Positions 11,413 through 27,227 of a stretch of DNA of 33,000 nt are shown one piece after another. Both the position numbers and the translations under genes were made by a program. Origin of the DNA: Paragordius varius (lineage: Eukaryota; Animalia; Nematomorpha). Each line of letters opens with the position of its first letter. Within the stretch, counting starts at the first letter, position 1. The notes below the pieces were generated by a model. The model saw only the letters and a list, made by a program, of their open reading frames with translations. It was not told the origin of the DNA and did no database searches. Where the stretch lies: the NCBI GenBank assembly GCA_964247055.1, contig OZ176052.1, forward strand, positions 2,914,001 to 2,947,000, given 5' to 3'.

Positions 11413-11473
11413 AGCAACTTAAATCCTACTAAAATCAGTACCCATACAATTTAGCATAATCACATAAAATGTG
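11413..11473. promoter_or_regulatory. Putative bidirectional promoter / shared 5' region of synaptojanin and WDR24
   Basis: Divergent ATGs 61 bp apart. Each has an in-frame TAA shortly upstream and each aligns near the homolog's conserved N-terminus. Confidence 0.6.
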
Positions 11474-14400
11474 ATGTTATTTAAATTGGAGGCACCTTTA
11501 AATGCCATAAGCGTGTGCAATAAAAGCCAATGCCTTGCTATAGCTGGGCGAAATCTGTTGAAAGTTTACAATATTCGGATAGAAATCGGCCATCCCATCA
11601 AAATAGAAGAACTTATGAATTTAAGACGCGGACGCAATTTGAATCAAGGTTGTACTGATATATCATGGAATCCAGAACAAACCAACATTTTAGCCTCAGC
11701 AACGGCTAATGGATCCCTTATTTTGTGGGATATGGAAAAAACATCTCCCACCAAACAAACTAAAACAATAACCCAACATACAAGAGCTGTCAATCGATTG
11801 TGTTTTAACCCTGGAAATTCTAACATTCTTTTAAGTGGTTCTCAGGATGGCTCAATGAAATGTTTTGATATAAGGAATCAACAGACAACTCATATATTTT
11901 CAGGGTAATCAAATATTAATTAGAAAAATTTGCTAAATTTTATCAAATTTTATATAGAGATACAAAAATTTATCGATTGAACTCTTGTTAGAAATACTGA
12001 CAGTGTACGAGATGTCAATTTTAATCCACATAATACCAATGTCTTTGCTGCGGGCCAAGAAAACGGTACAATTCAATTATGGGATCTTAGAGCTCCTGCA
12101 ACACCCTATAGAGAATTCTCGGCTCACAATGGACCAGCTTTTTCATGTGAATGGTACCCATATTCACCAAATTTGCTTGGTTCAGCTGGTCGCGATAAAT
12201 TTATAAAGGTGTTTTTTGAATCATTTTTTTAAATTTTTATATGACATAAACTAAATTTATTAATAATTAATTAATTACAGCAAAAAAATGGAAATAAAGT
12301 TTACATATATAAACCTTAATGATAAAACTCACTTTTTCCCTTATTTGCCAATAATATTAAGAGTAATGCTAATAATAATTTGCCTTTATTACTATAATAT
12401 TAACATAACATTTATAATGAAAATCATACTCCCTATTATACAAGTAACATGATAAAATTTTGATTAACTTTTTCAGTAGTAGTTTTTTTAAATTTTTGTC
12501 ATTTCTCTTGAGTTCTCATGTATAAAAACTACATGTTAATTTTGACCTTAAACTGACCATAAAAATGTATTATGGATTTTGCAAATACATATTTGATAAA
12601 TTACACATAAATTTGAATTCTGTTGTATTTTATGTTAATTTTTTTTTGTTTTGTGGGGCGGAATAGGTTTGGGACATATCCTACCTTCCAAGATTAGAAA
12701 AAAGTTTGCAATCTTTTGCCTCCATATCCCGTATAAAATGGAAACCAGTAGAACATTCCAAAAATACTTTTACGACCGCTGACAATCCGATTGAAAACGG
12801 TTCATTTGAATTGGTTAGCACATGCTTAGTATTCGATCATAATGTAAATTTGTGGGATTTACAAAAACCTTGGACACCTCAATTCTGTTTTTATCCACAC
12901 AATGATATTGTTACCGGTTTATTTAATTTATTTTTTGGCAAACTAATTTTTTTGGGTAGCCGGACTAAATAAACTTTTTGGGGATGTTTATGCTTGTATA
13001 ACCTACAAAAATATATTTATTATATTTTAGATTTAAAAAAACACGGTCAATATCGATTTTAATATTTAATTTAATATTATTATTATCATAACATTTATTT
13101 AATATCAATTTTTTAATTATTTATCAATGTTGAATTTACAATTGCTATCATATTGCATTTTAGGCATTAGTTGGTATACACCACACTTGAACGATAACGA
13201 CACATCATACATTGTCTCATGCAGTAAAGACGCCACCTTAGCAATTTATAAACCGCCTGATTGTGTTACTACTCCACATTTAAATCTTAATGATACATTT
13301 TATTATACACCATGTCAGTACAAGGTACAACCTTTTGCTTTGGATTGGAGTTTTAGCGGTACAAATCATTCAATGTTAGCTAGTGTTGAACCGCTGTCAT
13401 TATCTCTTAATTTAAAAGAAAATGTAACATCAAAAACTCCTCTAGATAATTTGTTGCATCTTATGACAGATTTAAACATTTTCGATAATCAGTTGCAGGA
13501 TAAAGATTTAAGTGCTTCTTGGAATTTAGTGTCTACAGATGGGAGGAGAGATGTTCTAGAAAAGTTATTACTTTCAAACAACATGTCGCATACAGATTCA
13601 ATGGAATCCCATATGATTGACAATAATACCAAAAATGATGCGGACCTATCGGTAGAATACATAAGTACAGGAATCGATATAACTGACATGTCGGGGGATC
13701 AAATCATCTCTGAACAAACGTTTATCATGACTGCGCAGCAAGGGGAAAATTTTAAGCCGAATGGTACCATTTCTGATTCGCATGGTTTCACTTTGGTCTC
13801 ATACAAAAAATTATCATCACGTAAAAACAAAGCTAAAAATCTTACTTCGACTCGTGGCATGGACTTATCAAAAGAGTGGATATCTCAGAAAAAGAATGAT
13901 GAAAGAATCACAACTCAAGCATATACTGCAGATATTTTACCACAAAGTGCCATGCGAAAAAATTTATCGCTCCAATTTACAAGTTTTATAGCGTCATATT
14001 TAATTTTTTATTTTCTTACATCACGTCATACGGAATAGTAGTATTTAAGTGTTTTTAGATAAAATTTGTTTCGATTTGGACATATGTATTAAAAGCGTTT
14101 GATTGGAAAATTATTATATAATTCAAAATATTGTTCAGTCTTTTTGTAAATTTAGGCCTTTTTATTTATCATTATTTAATAACAATCTGTTATTAATATT
14201 TCTAGCCTTTAGTTTTAAACTAAAATTGTACATTTCCCGATATCGATTGAAATTTTCTTGGTTTTATATTTCAACTCTTTTGCTTGGTAGAAAAAACGTA
14301 ATAACGATCAATTTTTTTAGATTAGTTTTTATCACTTAAAAATTTGAAAAGAGACAACACAAATTTATTAATAAATTAAATACTACAGAAACAAACTTGT

Positions 14401-20540: not shown

Positions 20541-22936
20541 TTTATCGTTTGTATTGTTAGTAAAATAGAAATTATAATTTATAAGTTGAATAAAAAAATA
20601 TTTTTGCAAAAATTTAAAAAAAAGCTTTAACACTCGCCTTCCTAGGCTGACAAGAGAATAGTGTAATATTTTGTGATTATAATAAATTTATATGCCGACA
20701 TCTTTATTACTAATCTTCATATGACGAATTTTAACATTATTATAGTGTGAAGATAACATTTATAGTTACCTGATTTAAAATTAATATAATAATTTATATT
20801 TAAAAATATTATACGCCATCTTGTTAATAAAATAGTTAAATAAAAATTTTGTTACTTAAAATATTTTTAAATATGCTGATTGTACTCACTACGTTATGTT
20901 TTGTGGTCAACTTTTTAAATTCTTTAATTTCTTGATAAAGTGGCATGGATCTTCATAATGTGAACAATAGAAATTAAACTTCATAAAAGAGAAATTGCAT
21001 AAATAGCAAAATGTGGCAAGTTATCAGACTTTTGGCTGTATTTTTCATTCATTTTAATTTTATCATATATATTTATAGTTTTAGAAACTTACACTAAAAG
21101 GCCAAATAAAGCTTTGATAGATTCATATAAGCATTTTTAGGTTTTTTTTTAATTTTGAAATGTAATCACAAATTTACTAAGATAATTTAAGTCGTGTTAT
21201 GAAAATATATCTTAATTTTGTTGAATGAAGCCTTTATTTTTAAGCTCGTCTAAGAATCGCCGTCTGCGAGCGAATCCGACCTATTTCAGTTGAAAATTTC
21301 AAAGTTTTATATTGACTTTTGATTTCTCAAAAAATAACGGATGTCATGTTGCAATACCACAAGGTAGGTAAGAACATTCGGAACACTTTGCCGTTAAACA
21401 AAAATTAATACAAAATTTAGTGAAACACAAATATTATTAAACTTTCTCCAAGGCCTATGATAATTTCTTAATATTAATATACGCTTCTTGTATAATATAC
21501 TGAATAATTAATTTTTTACTTCGGTCAAAGTTCTAGCCAAAATACTAATGATCAATTGTTTGTCATTTTCGTTTTTGCATATATTTCTCTTATATGGCGT
21601 TTACTCATTTTTTCAGAAAAATGCTAAAAAGATATGAATTATAATAAGAATTAAAACGCATGGTTATATTGCGATTGTACCGTGTGCAATAACGTTGGAA
21701 AATATATATTATATCTAAGTTTATTATTACATAAAATACTAAAAAAAGACTAGGAGATTTTGGCCATACCTTGTCCACCTTATACATAGGGTACTTTAAA
21801 TCGGACTTTTAGCACTATCTAATTAACATTTTTAACTGCTAATTATACTCACTCTTTAAAGGTTCTATTTTTTGGGATACAGCCTTAAATTAAGAAGTGA
21901 ACCCCCTATAAGTCTAATTTTGTCACCAAATAGATGTCATAATTATGAAGATTTAATATTATTGAATAATAATTATCAAATACAAATAAATCAATTTTAT
22001 AATTTTTTAAAATGTTCATGATGTATTTGCCATGCATTTTGCACACAATCAGGTCATTTTAAGTTCTATTTTGGAATCAAAGCTAGGTTTGTTTTGTTTT
22101 TGAATATGTGATATGGATGGCCTTTAAAATATTTTGATTGGTTTAATTTCGCAAAAAGCCATGCGCAAAAAAAAATTTATTTATACTAAATTTTGAAATA
22201 ATAGAAAGATGCTTAAATCGCTTGAATAATTATAAAACATTTTGTAAATGGGTAGTAGGTATATATATATTGTGTGCAAAAAAGAGGGTCATTTTGATGT
22301 AACAAAAAATTTTTTTTCATGTGATAGATTATAACGAGCTAATTCATTTCCCGCATTTTTATTTGTTAACAACCTAGTTTTGAAATATTCAAAGAAAATC
22401 AAAATTGGGCAAACAGTGAAAATTAAGGTTAATTGAGGATAATTGAAAAAATAATGATAAAGTTTGAGATATTATGGTTTATTATCATTTATGGATATAT
22501 TTTCAATATATAAATAGCCTAAAATCATATAGTTAGGGTTTCTATAAAATTTCAAGTCAAAAGATGGCGTTTTTCTTTTATCACACTTTAAAGACAAAAA
22601 AATTTAATGAAACTATATTAAAATAATTTTTTTTAATTATTTATTACCTAAACTCACTATTATAATCTTAACACTCATATTTTATTCATAAAAAACTTAT
22701 ATATCAAAACCAAAAATATTGTTTTTAATTTTTATATTTTTTGTCATCTGGTTTATGAGTGTATAAAAAATTCATACTGTTTTATTTGGAATCTTACATG
22801 AGTTGGTATGGTTTAATATTTAATTTATGCAAAATAGAATTTAAAAGTAGTGATATATCAACCAACAACCCTTACAAATACCTACAAAAATACTAATTTG
22901 TCTTAAAACGAATTGTTATAGGGATTTGTAAGGATT

Positions 22937-23308
22937 AACAGTTGTTAAAATCCGTAATATAACGACAAAGGATAATTAAATATAATTAAATAAAATTATA
23001 AATAAAAATTATAAACGATATGTGAAACCCTTCGTCAATAGTAATCGCAGACTAGTTTCGTGCTTGTTAGCACTCATCAGTACGACACAACTATTTGACT
23101 TGGGGTTTTTTACATATCGATTTCGTACATATATCCAACTTTGCAATTTTGGTATAAATGCAGTTGGTTATACGAATTTAAATTAAATTTTAATGTAATT
23201 TATGAAAATTAAACTGAATTTCTATTTATCCTTTATCGTTATATTACAGATTTTAACAACTGTTAATACAAAACATAATCAATCCGTTAATTACCATTAC
23301 AATATCAT
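22937..23308 (-). mobile_element. Non-autonomous hammerhead-bearing retro-insertion (Penelope-like pLTR / retrozyme-like)
   Basis: Flanked by the direct repeat ATTTGTAAGGATT (22924-22936 and 23309-23321). The equivalent site occurs once in the sister foldback copy (~25086-25100). It has ~40-bp inverted repeats (22934-22976 / 23226-23267), an internal hammerhead and no ORF. Confidence 0.75.
23045..23085 (-). ncRNA. Minimal type I hammerhead ribozyme
   Basis: The minus strand reads UCGUA-CUGAUGA-GUGCU-AACA-AGCAC-GAAA-CUAG-UC-UGCGA. It has stem I UCGUA/UGCGA, an intact CUGAUGA core, a 5-bp stem II, GAAA, a vestigial palindromic stem III (ACUAGU) and a GUC cleavage triplet. Predicted cut is between 23050 and 23049. 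Confidence 0.9.
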
Positions 23309-23777
23309 ATTTGTAAGGATTGTTGCTTGATATTCCACTACTTTAATTCCTATTTTAAAATTATATATTTAATAATCTAATGTAAGATTCCAAAATAAAA
23401 CATATAAATTTTTATACACATAAACCAGATAACAAAAAATGCAAAAATTAAAAACAATATTTTTGGTTTTATATTAATAGATAAGTTTTTTATACTGAAT
23501 AAAATATGAAGTTAAGATTGTAATAGTGAGTTTAGGCAGTAAATAATTAAAAAAACTTATTTTAATGTAGTGTCATTTAAAAAAAATTGGCTTTTAAGTG
23601 TGTTAAAAAACGCCAACTTATGAGGTGAATTATAGAAACCCTAACTATATGATTTTAGGCCATTTATATATTGAAAATATATCCTTAAATGTTAATAAAC
23701 CATAATATCTCAAATTTTATCATTATTTTTTGAATTATCCTTAATTTACCTTGTTCAATTTCGATTTTCTCTCAATA

Positions 23778-25892: not shown

Positions 25893-27227
25893 ATGGACTC
25901 ATTTGAAGATTTGAATTTGGATTTATTGCGATCGAAAAATTTTACGCGGTGTATTAATTTTAGCTCTATTATATTGCATGACACACCGTTAAAACAATTT
26001 AATCGAATATCATCCATCATTTTATGCTTACTTGGTGTAATAGGAAATTCCATGGGTCTAATAATTGCCTCCTATCGAAGCAAACACAAAATGACTCCAT
26101 TAAATGAGGTTTGCAATAACACCCCCGAAAGTAAAAATGCCTATCCGTTACGCATTTCGTTTAAATTGAGATCGTCTATGCGTCAACTTAGATTAACGGG
26201 TTTACCCAACAACCAATACGTATTATTTCTATTCTATGCCGTAAACATTGTAAATTCCCTACTCCTAATCCCTTACCCTATCTTTAAAACTGTAAGGTCA
26301 GAAAAACTGACATTACTTTTGTGGGATAATTGGAGTTGGTCTTACTATATGTCTCACATTCATTTCATCGTGTCCAAAAGTTTGGTTAGTTTTGGGTTTT
26401 TGCTTTACATCATATTCTTTGCAAACCAATTCTTAATCATATACGTTCCGTATAGATATAATACGTATGTTACACGGACCCGAATTAATGTATGTGTGAC
26501 AATAGTGTTGCTATATTGCATAGCTTGGCAAATACCATTGTATTTTTGGTCTGAACCCGTTCGAATCAATGTTTGCTTATACAAAACCAACAACAACAGC
26601 AATCAGTTTGAAACCAAATCCATATGGTATCAACATCTAGTATATGATGAACACATCCTATCCTGGATGAAATATTATAGCTTGTTTAGGGAACTTTTTG
26701 TTCTCATTATTCCTTTCACGTGGTTAATTGCTATGCAATCGTTGTTATTGAATTATACGTCTGAAAAGTTACGGCATTATCAACGTTTTCATTTACGAAA
26801 ACGATTCAAATCGATTTTCCCCAAAGTACAAGCGGATGACAGGGGGACTTCTATCGTATGTAATGCAAGTTCAATGACTCCTTCGTTACTTGAAGAAATT
26901 AGGAAAAGTTTGGTAAATGATAGATTATATCGTAAGAATTTGAGTAGTAACAAAGAAATATCCAAAACTATACTCATATTGTCGGTCGAATTTATATTTT
27001 TGCTTTTTCCCTTGTCAGCCTTTGAAGCTGTATGGTATTTTGTTATAAAAACGCCTGAAAAACATAAAAACGTTTTAAATATCTATATATTCACCATATT
27101 ATTGGAGCACATCTATATTACATGCTCTTTTTACATCAATTATACGTTTAATCCTTTATATAGAAAATTTATTAAAGATAGATTTATTATCCTAATTAAT
27201 CAGGTAATATTTAGAAGATCTATTTAA
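25893..27227 (+). CDS. Intronless 7-transmembrane rhodopsin-class GPCR, divergent (peptide-receptor/srw-like)
   Basis: 444-aa uninterrupted ORF in very AT-rich DNA with seven hydrophobic segments. TM1 has LGVIGN; TM3 ends ANQFLIIYVPYRY (DRY position); TM4 has WQIP; TM5 has IIPF; TM6 has FIFLLFP; TM7/helix 8 reads CSFYINYTFNPLYRK. N-terminal NFT/NFS sequons are present. Confidence 0.85.
   Translation: MDSFEDLNLDLLRSKNFTRCINFSSIILHDTPLKQFNRISSIILCLLGVIGNSMGLIIASYRSKHKMTPLNEVCNNTPESKNAYPLRISFKLRSSMRQLRLTGLPNNQYVLFLFYAVNIVNSLLLIPYPIFKTVRSEKLTLLLWDNWSWSYYMSHIHFIVSKSLVSFGFLLYIIFFANQFLIIYVPYRYNTYVTRTRINVCVTIVLLYCIAWQIPLYFWSEPVRINVCLYKTNNNSNQFETKSIWYQHLVYDEHILSWMKYYSLFRELFVLIIPFTWLIAMQSLLLNYTSEKLRHYQRFHLRKRFKSIFPKVQADDRGTSIVCNASSMTPSLLEEIRKSLVNDRLYRKNLSSNKEISKTILILSVEFIFLLFPLSAFEAVWYFVIKTPEKHKNVLNIYIFTILLEHIYITCSFYINYTFNPLYRKFIKDRFIILINQVIFRRSI

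Follow-up and report, generated by a model that had tools for sequence, protein, structure and literature searches.

The window analysed here, the whole 33,000-nt stretch of DNA, corresponds to C3:2914001–2947000 of a 110.6-Mb assembly of 44 contigs with a GC content of ~25%, the range being ~22–32%, and it carries a 372-bp insertion (22937–23308) flanked by an exact 13-bp direct repeat, ATTTGTAAGGATT, at 22924–22936 and 23309–23321. When the insert and one copy of the repeat are taken out, what remains runs colinear to the reverse-complemented left arm of the surrounding foldback (22500–22880), an uninterrupted sister arm in which the empty site lies at ~22861–22873; both the 13-bp target-site duplication (TSD) and the empty site given in a preliminary description of this DNA are confirmed by this reconstruction. 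Past the insert, the remainder of the right arm resumes at 23322–23677. The insert sits in a member (window 22500–23677) of a foldback family of ~850 bp with two inverted arms of ~420 bp, here 22500–22880 and 22912–22936 plus 23309–23677, separated by ~20 nt; across all large contigs the family is represented by at least 40 arm pairs of 75–89% identity. Matches to mir-249 and MIR7996 at 22850–22956 were rejected, as they represent the central hairpin of the foldback and are far below threshold. Elsewhere in the window, an ORF fragment with WD40 repeats (11471–11908; THOC3/WDR-like) is likely a host-gene exon, and the ORFs at 13127–14038 and 25893–27227 have no Pfam matches.

Alignment with copies elsewhere in the genome resolves the insert into two parts of opposite orientation. 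The minus strand of 22937–23218 is a direct, 5′-truncated copy of a 455-nt repeat unit (unit ~132–411), which includes a hammerhead motif and has its tail-less 3′ end at 22937; read along the ribozyme strand it is positions 91–372 of the insert, a segment 94–96% identical to more than 40 genomic copies. On the plus strand, an inverted partial copy supplies the 3′ end of the unit body (~370–411) at 23223–23265 and, beyond it, the 44-nt tail (unit 412–455) at 23266–23308, which matches the tail found elsewhere and is confined here to the inverted copy’s outer end. The two parts meet in a few bases of filler or microhomology (23219–23222), where BLAST segments stop at query position 86 and restart at 91. 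In unit coordinates (U), the window copy is rc(U~357–455) joined to U~130–411, with U1–131 missing. Because the element’s own 3′ end is duplicated in inverted orientation, the insert has an outer inverted repeat of 45–50 nt (22934–22983 with 23218–23267, 50 nt, 90% complementary), in which the inverted body segment pairs with 22937–22983 as the outer ‘rod’, and its 372-nt minus strand folds very stably at −116.8 kcal/mol (z = −11), in keeping with the rod-like fold expected of this strand. ORFs touching the insert reach 54 aa at most, as anticipated for an element without coding capacity, and a search for terminal direct repeats in the insert found none.

The minus strand at 23091–23040 reads as a canonical metazoan type-I hammerhead with helix I open. 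Helix I comprises 6 bp (GUCGUA, 23086–23081, with UGCGAU, 23049–23044) and is followed by the CUGAUGA core at 23080–23074, by a 5-bp helix II closed by the loop AACA (GUGCU-AACA-AGCAC, 23073–23060) and by GAAAC-UA-GUC at 23059–23050, all on the minus strand; helix III is reduced to 2 bp and a 2-nt loop and so forms the palindrome ACUAGU. The conserved order CUGAUGA...GAAA...UH together with an open helix I is that of the type-I class. Cleavage is predicted between 23050 and 23049, which would leave the U at 23049 as the new 5′ end; the preliminary description had read the parts and the cut in the same way. When 23010–23125 of the minus strand is folded, it forms one hairpin of −38.3 kcal/mol with the ribozyme at its tip, so that the extensions of stem I proposed earlier are present as an imperfect hairpin of ~45 bp, and the same arms recur in the canonical unit at locus L003. 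When two copies of the ribozyme were co-folded, a different pairing resulted, which was uninformative on dimer action.

A chance origin of the hammerhead is excluded, since the pattern CTGATGA-N(8–24)-CGAAAC has a single match in the window and none in 100 shuffled versions, and since the 31-nt ribozyme core has 220 genomic matches at up to three mismatches against none for the reversed control. A descriptor scan found the identical hammerhead variant 29 times across the window and the loci examined. Comparison with Rfam, suggested at the outset as a check, did return a hammerhead as best match (Hammerhead_HH9, 26.7 bits, E = 2e-4 in the 651-nt stretch searched), but below the HH9 gathering score of 52; the best copy of the window family (F1) genome-wide, at 29 bits, is likewise sub-threshold, and the window as a whole contains no hit at the gathering score of any Rfam family. 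This shortfall arises in part because the HH9 alignment skips five model positions of the helix III loop. Judged on its sequence, the hammerhead in the insert is real.

Further evidence comes from a second hammerhead family (F2) of ~73 nt in the same genome, which scores up to 38 bits with HH9 and up to 33.2 bits with Hammerhead_1 (threshold 34). It is present at dozens of genomic sites, including those of L058–L071, often as ‘minus then plus’ pairs such as C4:786563–786634(−) with 786982–787054(+). F2 retains CUGAUGA, GAAAC and GUC, whereas its helices differ from those of F1: helix I is GUGUGG/UCACAC in place of GUCGUA/UGCGAU, helix II is GUCC/GGAC in place of GUGCU/AGCAC, and the helix III palindrome is ACGCGU in place of ACUAGU. 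Of the six pairs of helix I, five differ on both sides, as does one pair of helix II, and the UA-to-GC change in the palindrome keeps its self-complementarity. Compensatory changes in all three helices thus support the predicted ribozyme fold, in a test that compares F1 with F2 only, two families of one genome, the F1 copies (82–97% alike among themselves) being too similar to be tested against each other. F2 has no ORF nearby, and five of its copies lie within a common ~2.5-kb repeat.

A genome-wide BLAST search with the insert returned 149 segments and brought out tandem copies and TSDs of variable sequence, both of which the preliminary description had proposed to look for. Most copies align, in the ribozyme-strand reading, to insert positions 91–372 only; upstream of position 91 most of them carry a different conserved sequence of ~131 nt, and downstream of position 372 they continue into a conserved 44-nt tail. 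In tandem copies the tail abuts the upstream part directly, with a constant junction between tail and unit start. The unit is accordingly 455 nt long and consists of an upstream part (U1–131), a middle part equivalent to insert 91–372 (U132–411) and the tail (U412–455). Tandem copies have a period of 444–455 nt; the 455-nt period is observed at loci L003, L004, L006, L007, L017, L022, L023 and L025, three direct cores on C4 are spaced by 444–445 nt, and the window copy is not tandem. Members of the family occur dispersed, in tandem (up to three units seen) and as head-to-head pairs, with variable 5′ truncation. Each unit has one type-I hammerhead, with a predicted cut after unit position ~301, ~110 nt upstream of the 3′ end of the body.

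The preliminary description took the 372-bp hairpin itself for the mobile unit, its RNA being designed as a rod with the ribozyme at the tip, and the z-score of −11 as well as an inverted arm at about the same place in six genomic copies speak for such a reading. When the six copies were aligned, however, junction, truncation point and flanks proved different in each, which identifies them as independent events and not as descendants of a hairpin master. Moreover, most copies have the 131-nt upstream part instead, with no matching arm, and the canonical unit is much less stable, folding only moderately better than shuffles (z = −3.6). We therefore consider it very improbable that the hairpin is the mobile unit: the family unit is the 455-nt sequence, and the window copy, which lacks U1–131, is a truncated head-to-head product. 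The inverted repeats said to close the unit do exist, but since the inversion junction is copy-specific, the outer rod is a by-product of insertion, and what is inherited family-wide is only the inner ~45-bp extension of helix I. The case calls for caution with hairpins of this kind, because a ‘ribozyme-tipped rod’ can arise from Penelope-type integration instead of from RNA design.

In every structural respect tested, the family has the form of a retrozyme. It is a non-coding repeat, a few hundred base pairs long, with one type-I hammerhead and tandem copies, as are non-LTR retrozymes; it has no LTR, and its TSDs of 13–18 bp exceed the 4 bp of plant LTR retrozymes.

How these units enter the genome can be read from 17 independent head-to-head insertions, the window copy among them. 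Exact flanking repeats of 13–18 bp (mode 13–14), all unrelated in sequence, were found in 15 of the 17, in agreement with the earlier assignment to a non-autonomous retroelement with a long TSD. The tail, reaching U446–455, is present at exactly one outer end in 15 of the 17; two insertions have partial tails only, and none has a tail at both outer ends. Both outer ends are always 3′ ends of the element, and all 15 close core pairs among the matches listed run ‘minus then plus’, with their 3′ ends outward. The 3′ ends of unit copies fall at unit 411–420 or 446–455 and rarely at 370–400, and are thus not perfectly fixed. A 12-nt flanking repeat, allowing up to two mismatches, was absent at the boundaries of ten partnerless copies and of the head-to-head insertion L022.

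These features bear directly on whether the insert could be a DNA-transposon MITE or foldback element in which the hammerhead is fortuitous, a reading that its inverted termini and its location inside a true foldback family might invite. TSDs of the fixed TA type, named in the preliminary description as the sign of a MITE, were not seen; at 13–18 bp and of unrelated sequence, the TSDs show no fixed short form. The ends are asymmetric, with the tail on one side, the junction is copy-specific, 5′ truncation is variable, and units occur in tandem. With 220 cores kept in the genome and a second family showing compensatory changes, a fortuitous hammerhead in a MITE is hardly credible.

The genome also harbours Penelope-like elements (PLEs) of several families, with more than 100 endonuclease-domain matches that are typically arranged in head-to-head pairs. 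One of these families, PLE-1, is intact, with RT/GIY-YIG ORFs of 787 and 743 aa and copies that are 95–100% identical (L053:5346–7709(−), L054:6089–8320(+), and also L055 and L056). Its 787-aa protein has the YVDD and GIY-YIG motifs, and the nearest Atlas protein clusters of PLE-1 are RT and GIY-YIG families, mostly from arthropods. PLE-1 always occurs in head-to-head pairs, and in four of its insertions an inverted 5′-truncated copy is combined with TSDs of 12–15 bp and with a ~33-nt tail that is confined to one end. Craig et al. (2021, PMC8557442) name as hallmarks of PLEs TSDs, 5′ truncation, partial tandems, the presence next to the element of an inverted 5′-truncated copy, and a 30–40-bp tail that is often at one end only; apart from the TSDs, these traits are reported there as PLE-specific and unseen in LINE target-primed reverse transcription (TPRT). 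The hammerhead family and PLE-1 alike show 5′ truncation, tandems, the inverted copy, the one-end tail and the TSD, and the TSD length of the former is similar to that of the RT/GIY-YIG elements of this genome. Because the family and PLE-1 share the anatomy listed as the PLE hallmark, a Penelope-type enzyme is the best-supported mobilizer, which was also the candidate favoured in the preliminary description. That the family inserts into other retroelements follows from locus L019 (1122–3137; C4:5136634–5138649), where a decayed PLE of another family, with 52–77% aa identity to PLE-1, is split in its coding region by a head-to-head insertion of the hammerhead family whose 13-bp TSD corresponds to a matching overlap in the protein alignment of the split PLE.

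In L1 twin priming, the inverted part of an insertion derives from RNA upstream of the direct part. The insertions described here resemble its products in combining a 5′-inverted segment and a 3′ direct segment within one TSD-flanked insertion, but differ in that both parts end at the 3′ terminus of the element and overlap in content. A SINE-like element moved by a LINE reverse transcriptase, with inversions due to twin priming, would have candidate enzymes in a genome with 150 strong RVT_1 matches, and long variable TSDs and 5′ truncation would also fit LINE TPRT. Yet the inverted segment repeats the 3′ terminus of the direct segment, not the region upstream of it, and is therefore not a twin-priming product; the 3′ end has neither poly(A) nor a simple repeat, the one-sided tail is reported as unseen in LINE TPRT (PMC8557442), and the resident PLEs have the identical anatomy. 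Mobilization by a LINE is, in our assessment, distinctly unlikely.

The linkage to a PLE RT–GIY-YIG ORF, named at the outset as a point to check, did not emerge, as no PLE sharing the unit sequence was encountered among the PLE copies examined. BLAST comparison of the unit with the PLE loci (copies of PLE-1, PLE-2 and PLE-3) gave only short low-scoring matches, from which an unrelated unit fragment in L052/L057 was set apart. No CUGANGA motif, and hence no canonical hammerhead core, is present in PLE-1, and an Rfam scan of 50 kb of PLE loci at E ≤ 0.1 gave no hammerhead match. Since the unit is without an ORF, the element is not itself a PLE, though it may depend on one. It could still be asked whether the copies are extremely 5′-truncated pLTR copies of an autonomous PLE and no separate family, given that Xenopus retrozymes are homologous to PLE pLTRs and that few of the several resident PLE families, with their more than 100 endonuclease-domain matches, were read. 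Every copy that passes unit position 1, however, goes on into a further unit’s tail and in no case into coding sequence, in contrast to truncated PLE-1 copies, which reach the endonuclease coding region. Two of the 100 cores listed were found no more than ~1.5 kb from a PLE endonuclease match; the first is an insertion into a PLE, and the second lies well beyond the expected end of its PLE. An origin of the family as truncated pLTRs therefore appears unlikely.

Taken together, we think it quite probable that the insert is a dead-on-arrival copy of a 455-nt non-coding hammerhead retrozyme that was integrated in trans by a PLE RT/GIY-YIG enzyme. We suggest a cycle in which multimeric transcripts of tandem copies would self-cleave after GUC, as published for related families, probably by way of dimeric hammerheads that use the palindromic helix III, and in which the resulting 455-nt monomers, by analogy, may be circularized by a host RNA ligase. 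Staggered cleavage of the target leaves the 13–18-bp TSDs. Each of the two nicked strands of the target would serve as a primer for reverse transcription in the 3′ region of the element RNA, and the two 5′-truncated cDNAs would end up fused head to head, with no set position for the junction. In the window copy, joining of rc(unit ~357–455) to unit ~130–411 would have created the accidental 45-bp outer hairpin. With a single ribozyme and no U1–131, this copy could at most cut a read-through transcript once.

Non-LTR retrozymes are described as non-coding low-GC tandem repeats of 150–450 bp with a type-I hammerhead and TSDs of more than 4 bp, with expression as RNAs of ~170–400 nt, both linear and circular, in many invertebrate phyla (PMC7229834). 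The family agrees with the metazoan examples of Cervera & de la Pena (2020, PMC7229834) in its type-I hammerhead, lack of coding capacity, low GC content, tandem and dispersed copies and TSDs longer than 4 bp, as well as in the form of the ribozyme, with a helix I of 6 bp, a helix II of 4–5 bp and a helix III of 1–2 bp with a small palindromic loop. It differs in that its 455-nt unit is at or just above the published upper size and its arrays comprise three units at most, copies being mostly single or head-to-head. The minimal hammerheads of PLE pLTRs, with a palindromic or vestigial helix III, have also been reported as opposite-strand motif pairs 100–700 bp apart (Cervera & de la Pena 2014, PMC4209133). 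For these as for the window ribozyme, such a helix III implies action as a dimer. In the PLE motifs helix II is long (7–8 bp) and preceded by a bulged base, and helix I is short, whereas the window ribozyme is built to the ‘canonical metazoan’ proportions that are typical of hammerheads in tandem repeats and retrozymes, an architecture that works inefficiently as a monomer and is active as a dimer if another copy lies nearby. The kind of element is thus already described in animals, including its link to PLEs, and no new category is opened; the earlier suggestion of an undescribed family holds for the sequence family, which is new, and not for the kind.

That retrozymes depend on PLEs was proposed by Craig et al. 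(2021, PMC8557442), and recent vertebrate work has argued for it from co-occurrence in species and from pLTR homology in Xenopus. We come to the same conclusion on a different basis, namely anatomy shared with resident PLEs and no sequence homology. Compared with PLEs as described (PMC8557442), the insertion anatomy is the same, while the element lacks an ORF and does not detectably resemble, in sequence, any of the PLE copies examined, and a canonical hammerhead is missing from the best-preserved PLE family of the genome. The inverted partial copy, one-sided tail and ~13-bp TSDs common to a non-coding element and to RT/GIY-YIG elements provide independent structural support for the published idea of animal retrozymes riding on PLEs. 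More tentatively, the family may amount to insertion-anatomy evidence that PLE RT/GIY-YIG enzymes integrate hammerhead retrozymes, a reading that we hold possible but not probable and that is based on head-to-head double priming, the one-sided tail and a nick stagger of ~12–14 bp as in the resident PLEs; we found no earlier published evidence of this type for PLE integration of retrozymes in the literature. If it is true, mobilization in trans would be independent of a shared pLTR or ribozyme sequence, and a small genome (110 Mb) whose partners have been recently active would be a tractable system for the poorly understood transposition cycle of PLEs. The animal genome concerned, small and AT-rich, also contributes a well-resolved family to the known retrozymes.

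Several further observations concern the other elements of this genome. In PLE-1, ~50 nt from the 3′ end, a hairpin of 7 bp is followed by CGAAA and resembles helix II of a minimal hammerhead; as a ribozyme candidate this 3′-UTR hairpin was rejected, as it is without C3 and G8 and no helix I can be drawn. A third PLE family includes a 5′-truncated head-to-head pair at L049:689–2206 (C5:6761455–6762972), in which a hammerhead-like motif (CUGAUGA followed by a helix II of 4 bp and by GAAAAUUU) lies ~70 nt before each 3′ end, with a helix III that is possible only in a dimer (AAUU). Degenerate endonuclease copies of this third family are found ~7–9 kb from many contig ends (C1:7648–9049; C2:7778–9144; C5:6853–8219; C7:7806–8132, in L057; C28:8488–8814; C3:14411682; C4:14188544–14188863), which suggests a shared subtelomeric block, and on C7 a fragment of the 455-nt unit is located ~1 kb upstream of the third-family copy (L057:6699–6844). 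Between 1.86 and 3.16 Mb of C2, dozens of near-identical RVT_1 ORFs of ~1,150–1,236 aa form blocks in both orientations, with spacings of ~14–30 kb between some neighbours and wider gaps elsewhere; they may represent an array-associated retroelement, for example an rDNA-specific one.

At the insert itself, the target site on the 3′ side (22907–22936, minus strand) resembles the tail, TTACAAA being present in both, and BLAST carries the unit alignment 25–30 nt into this flank. The target of locus L009 likewise begins TTACAAG, a resemblance between target and tail that hints at microhomology at priming.
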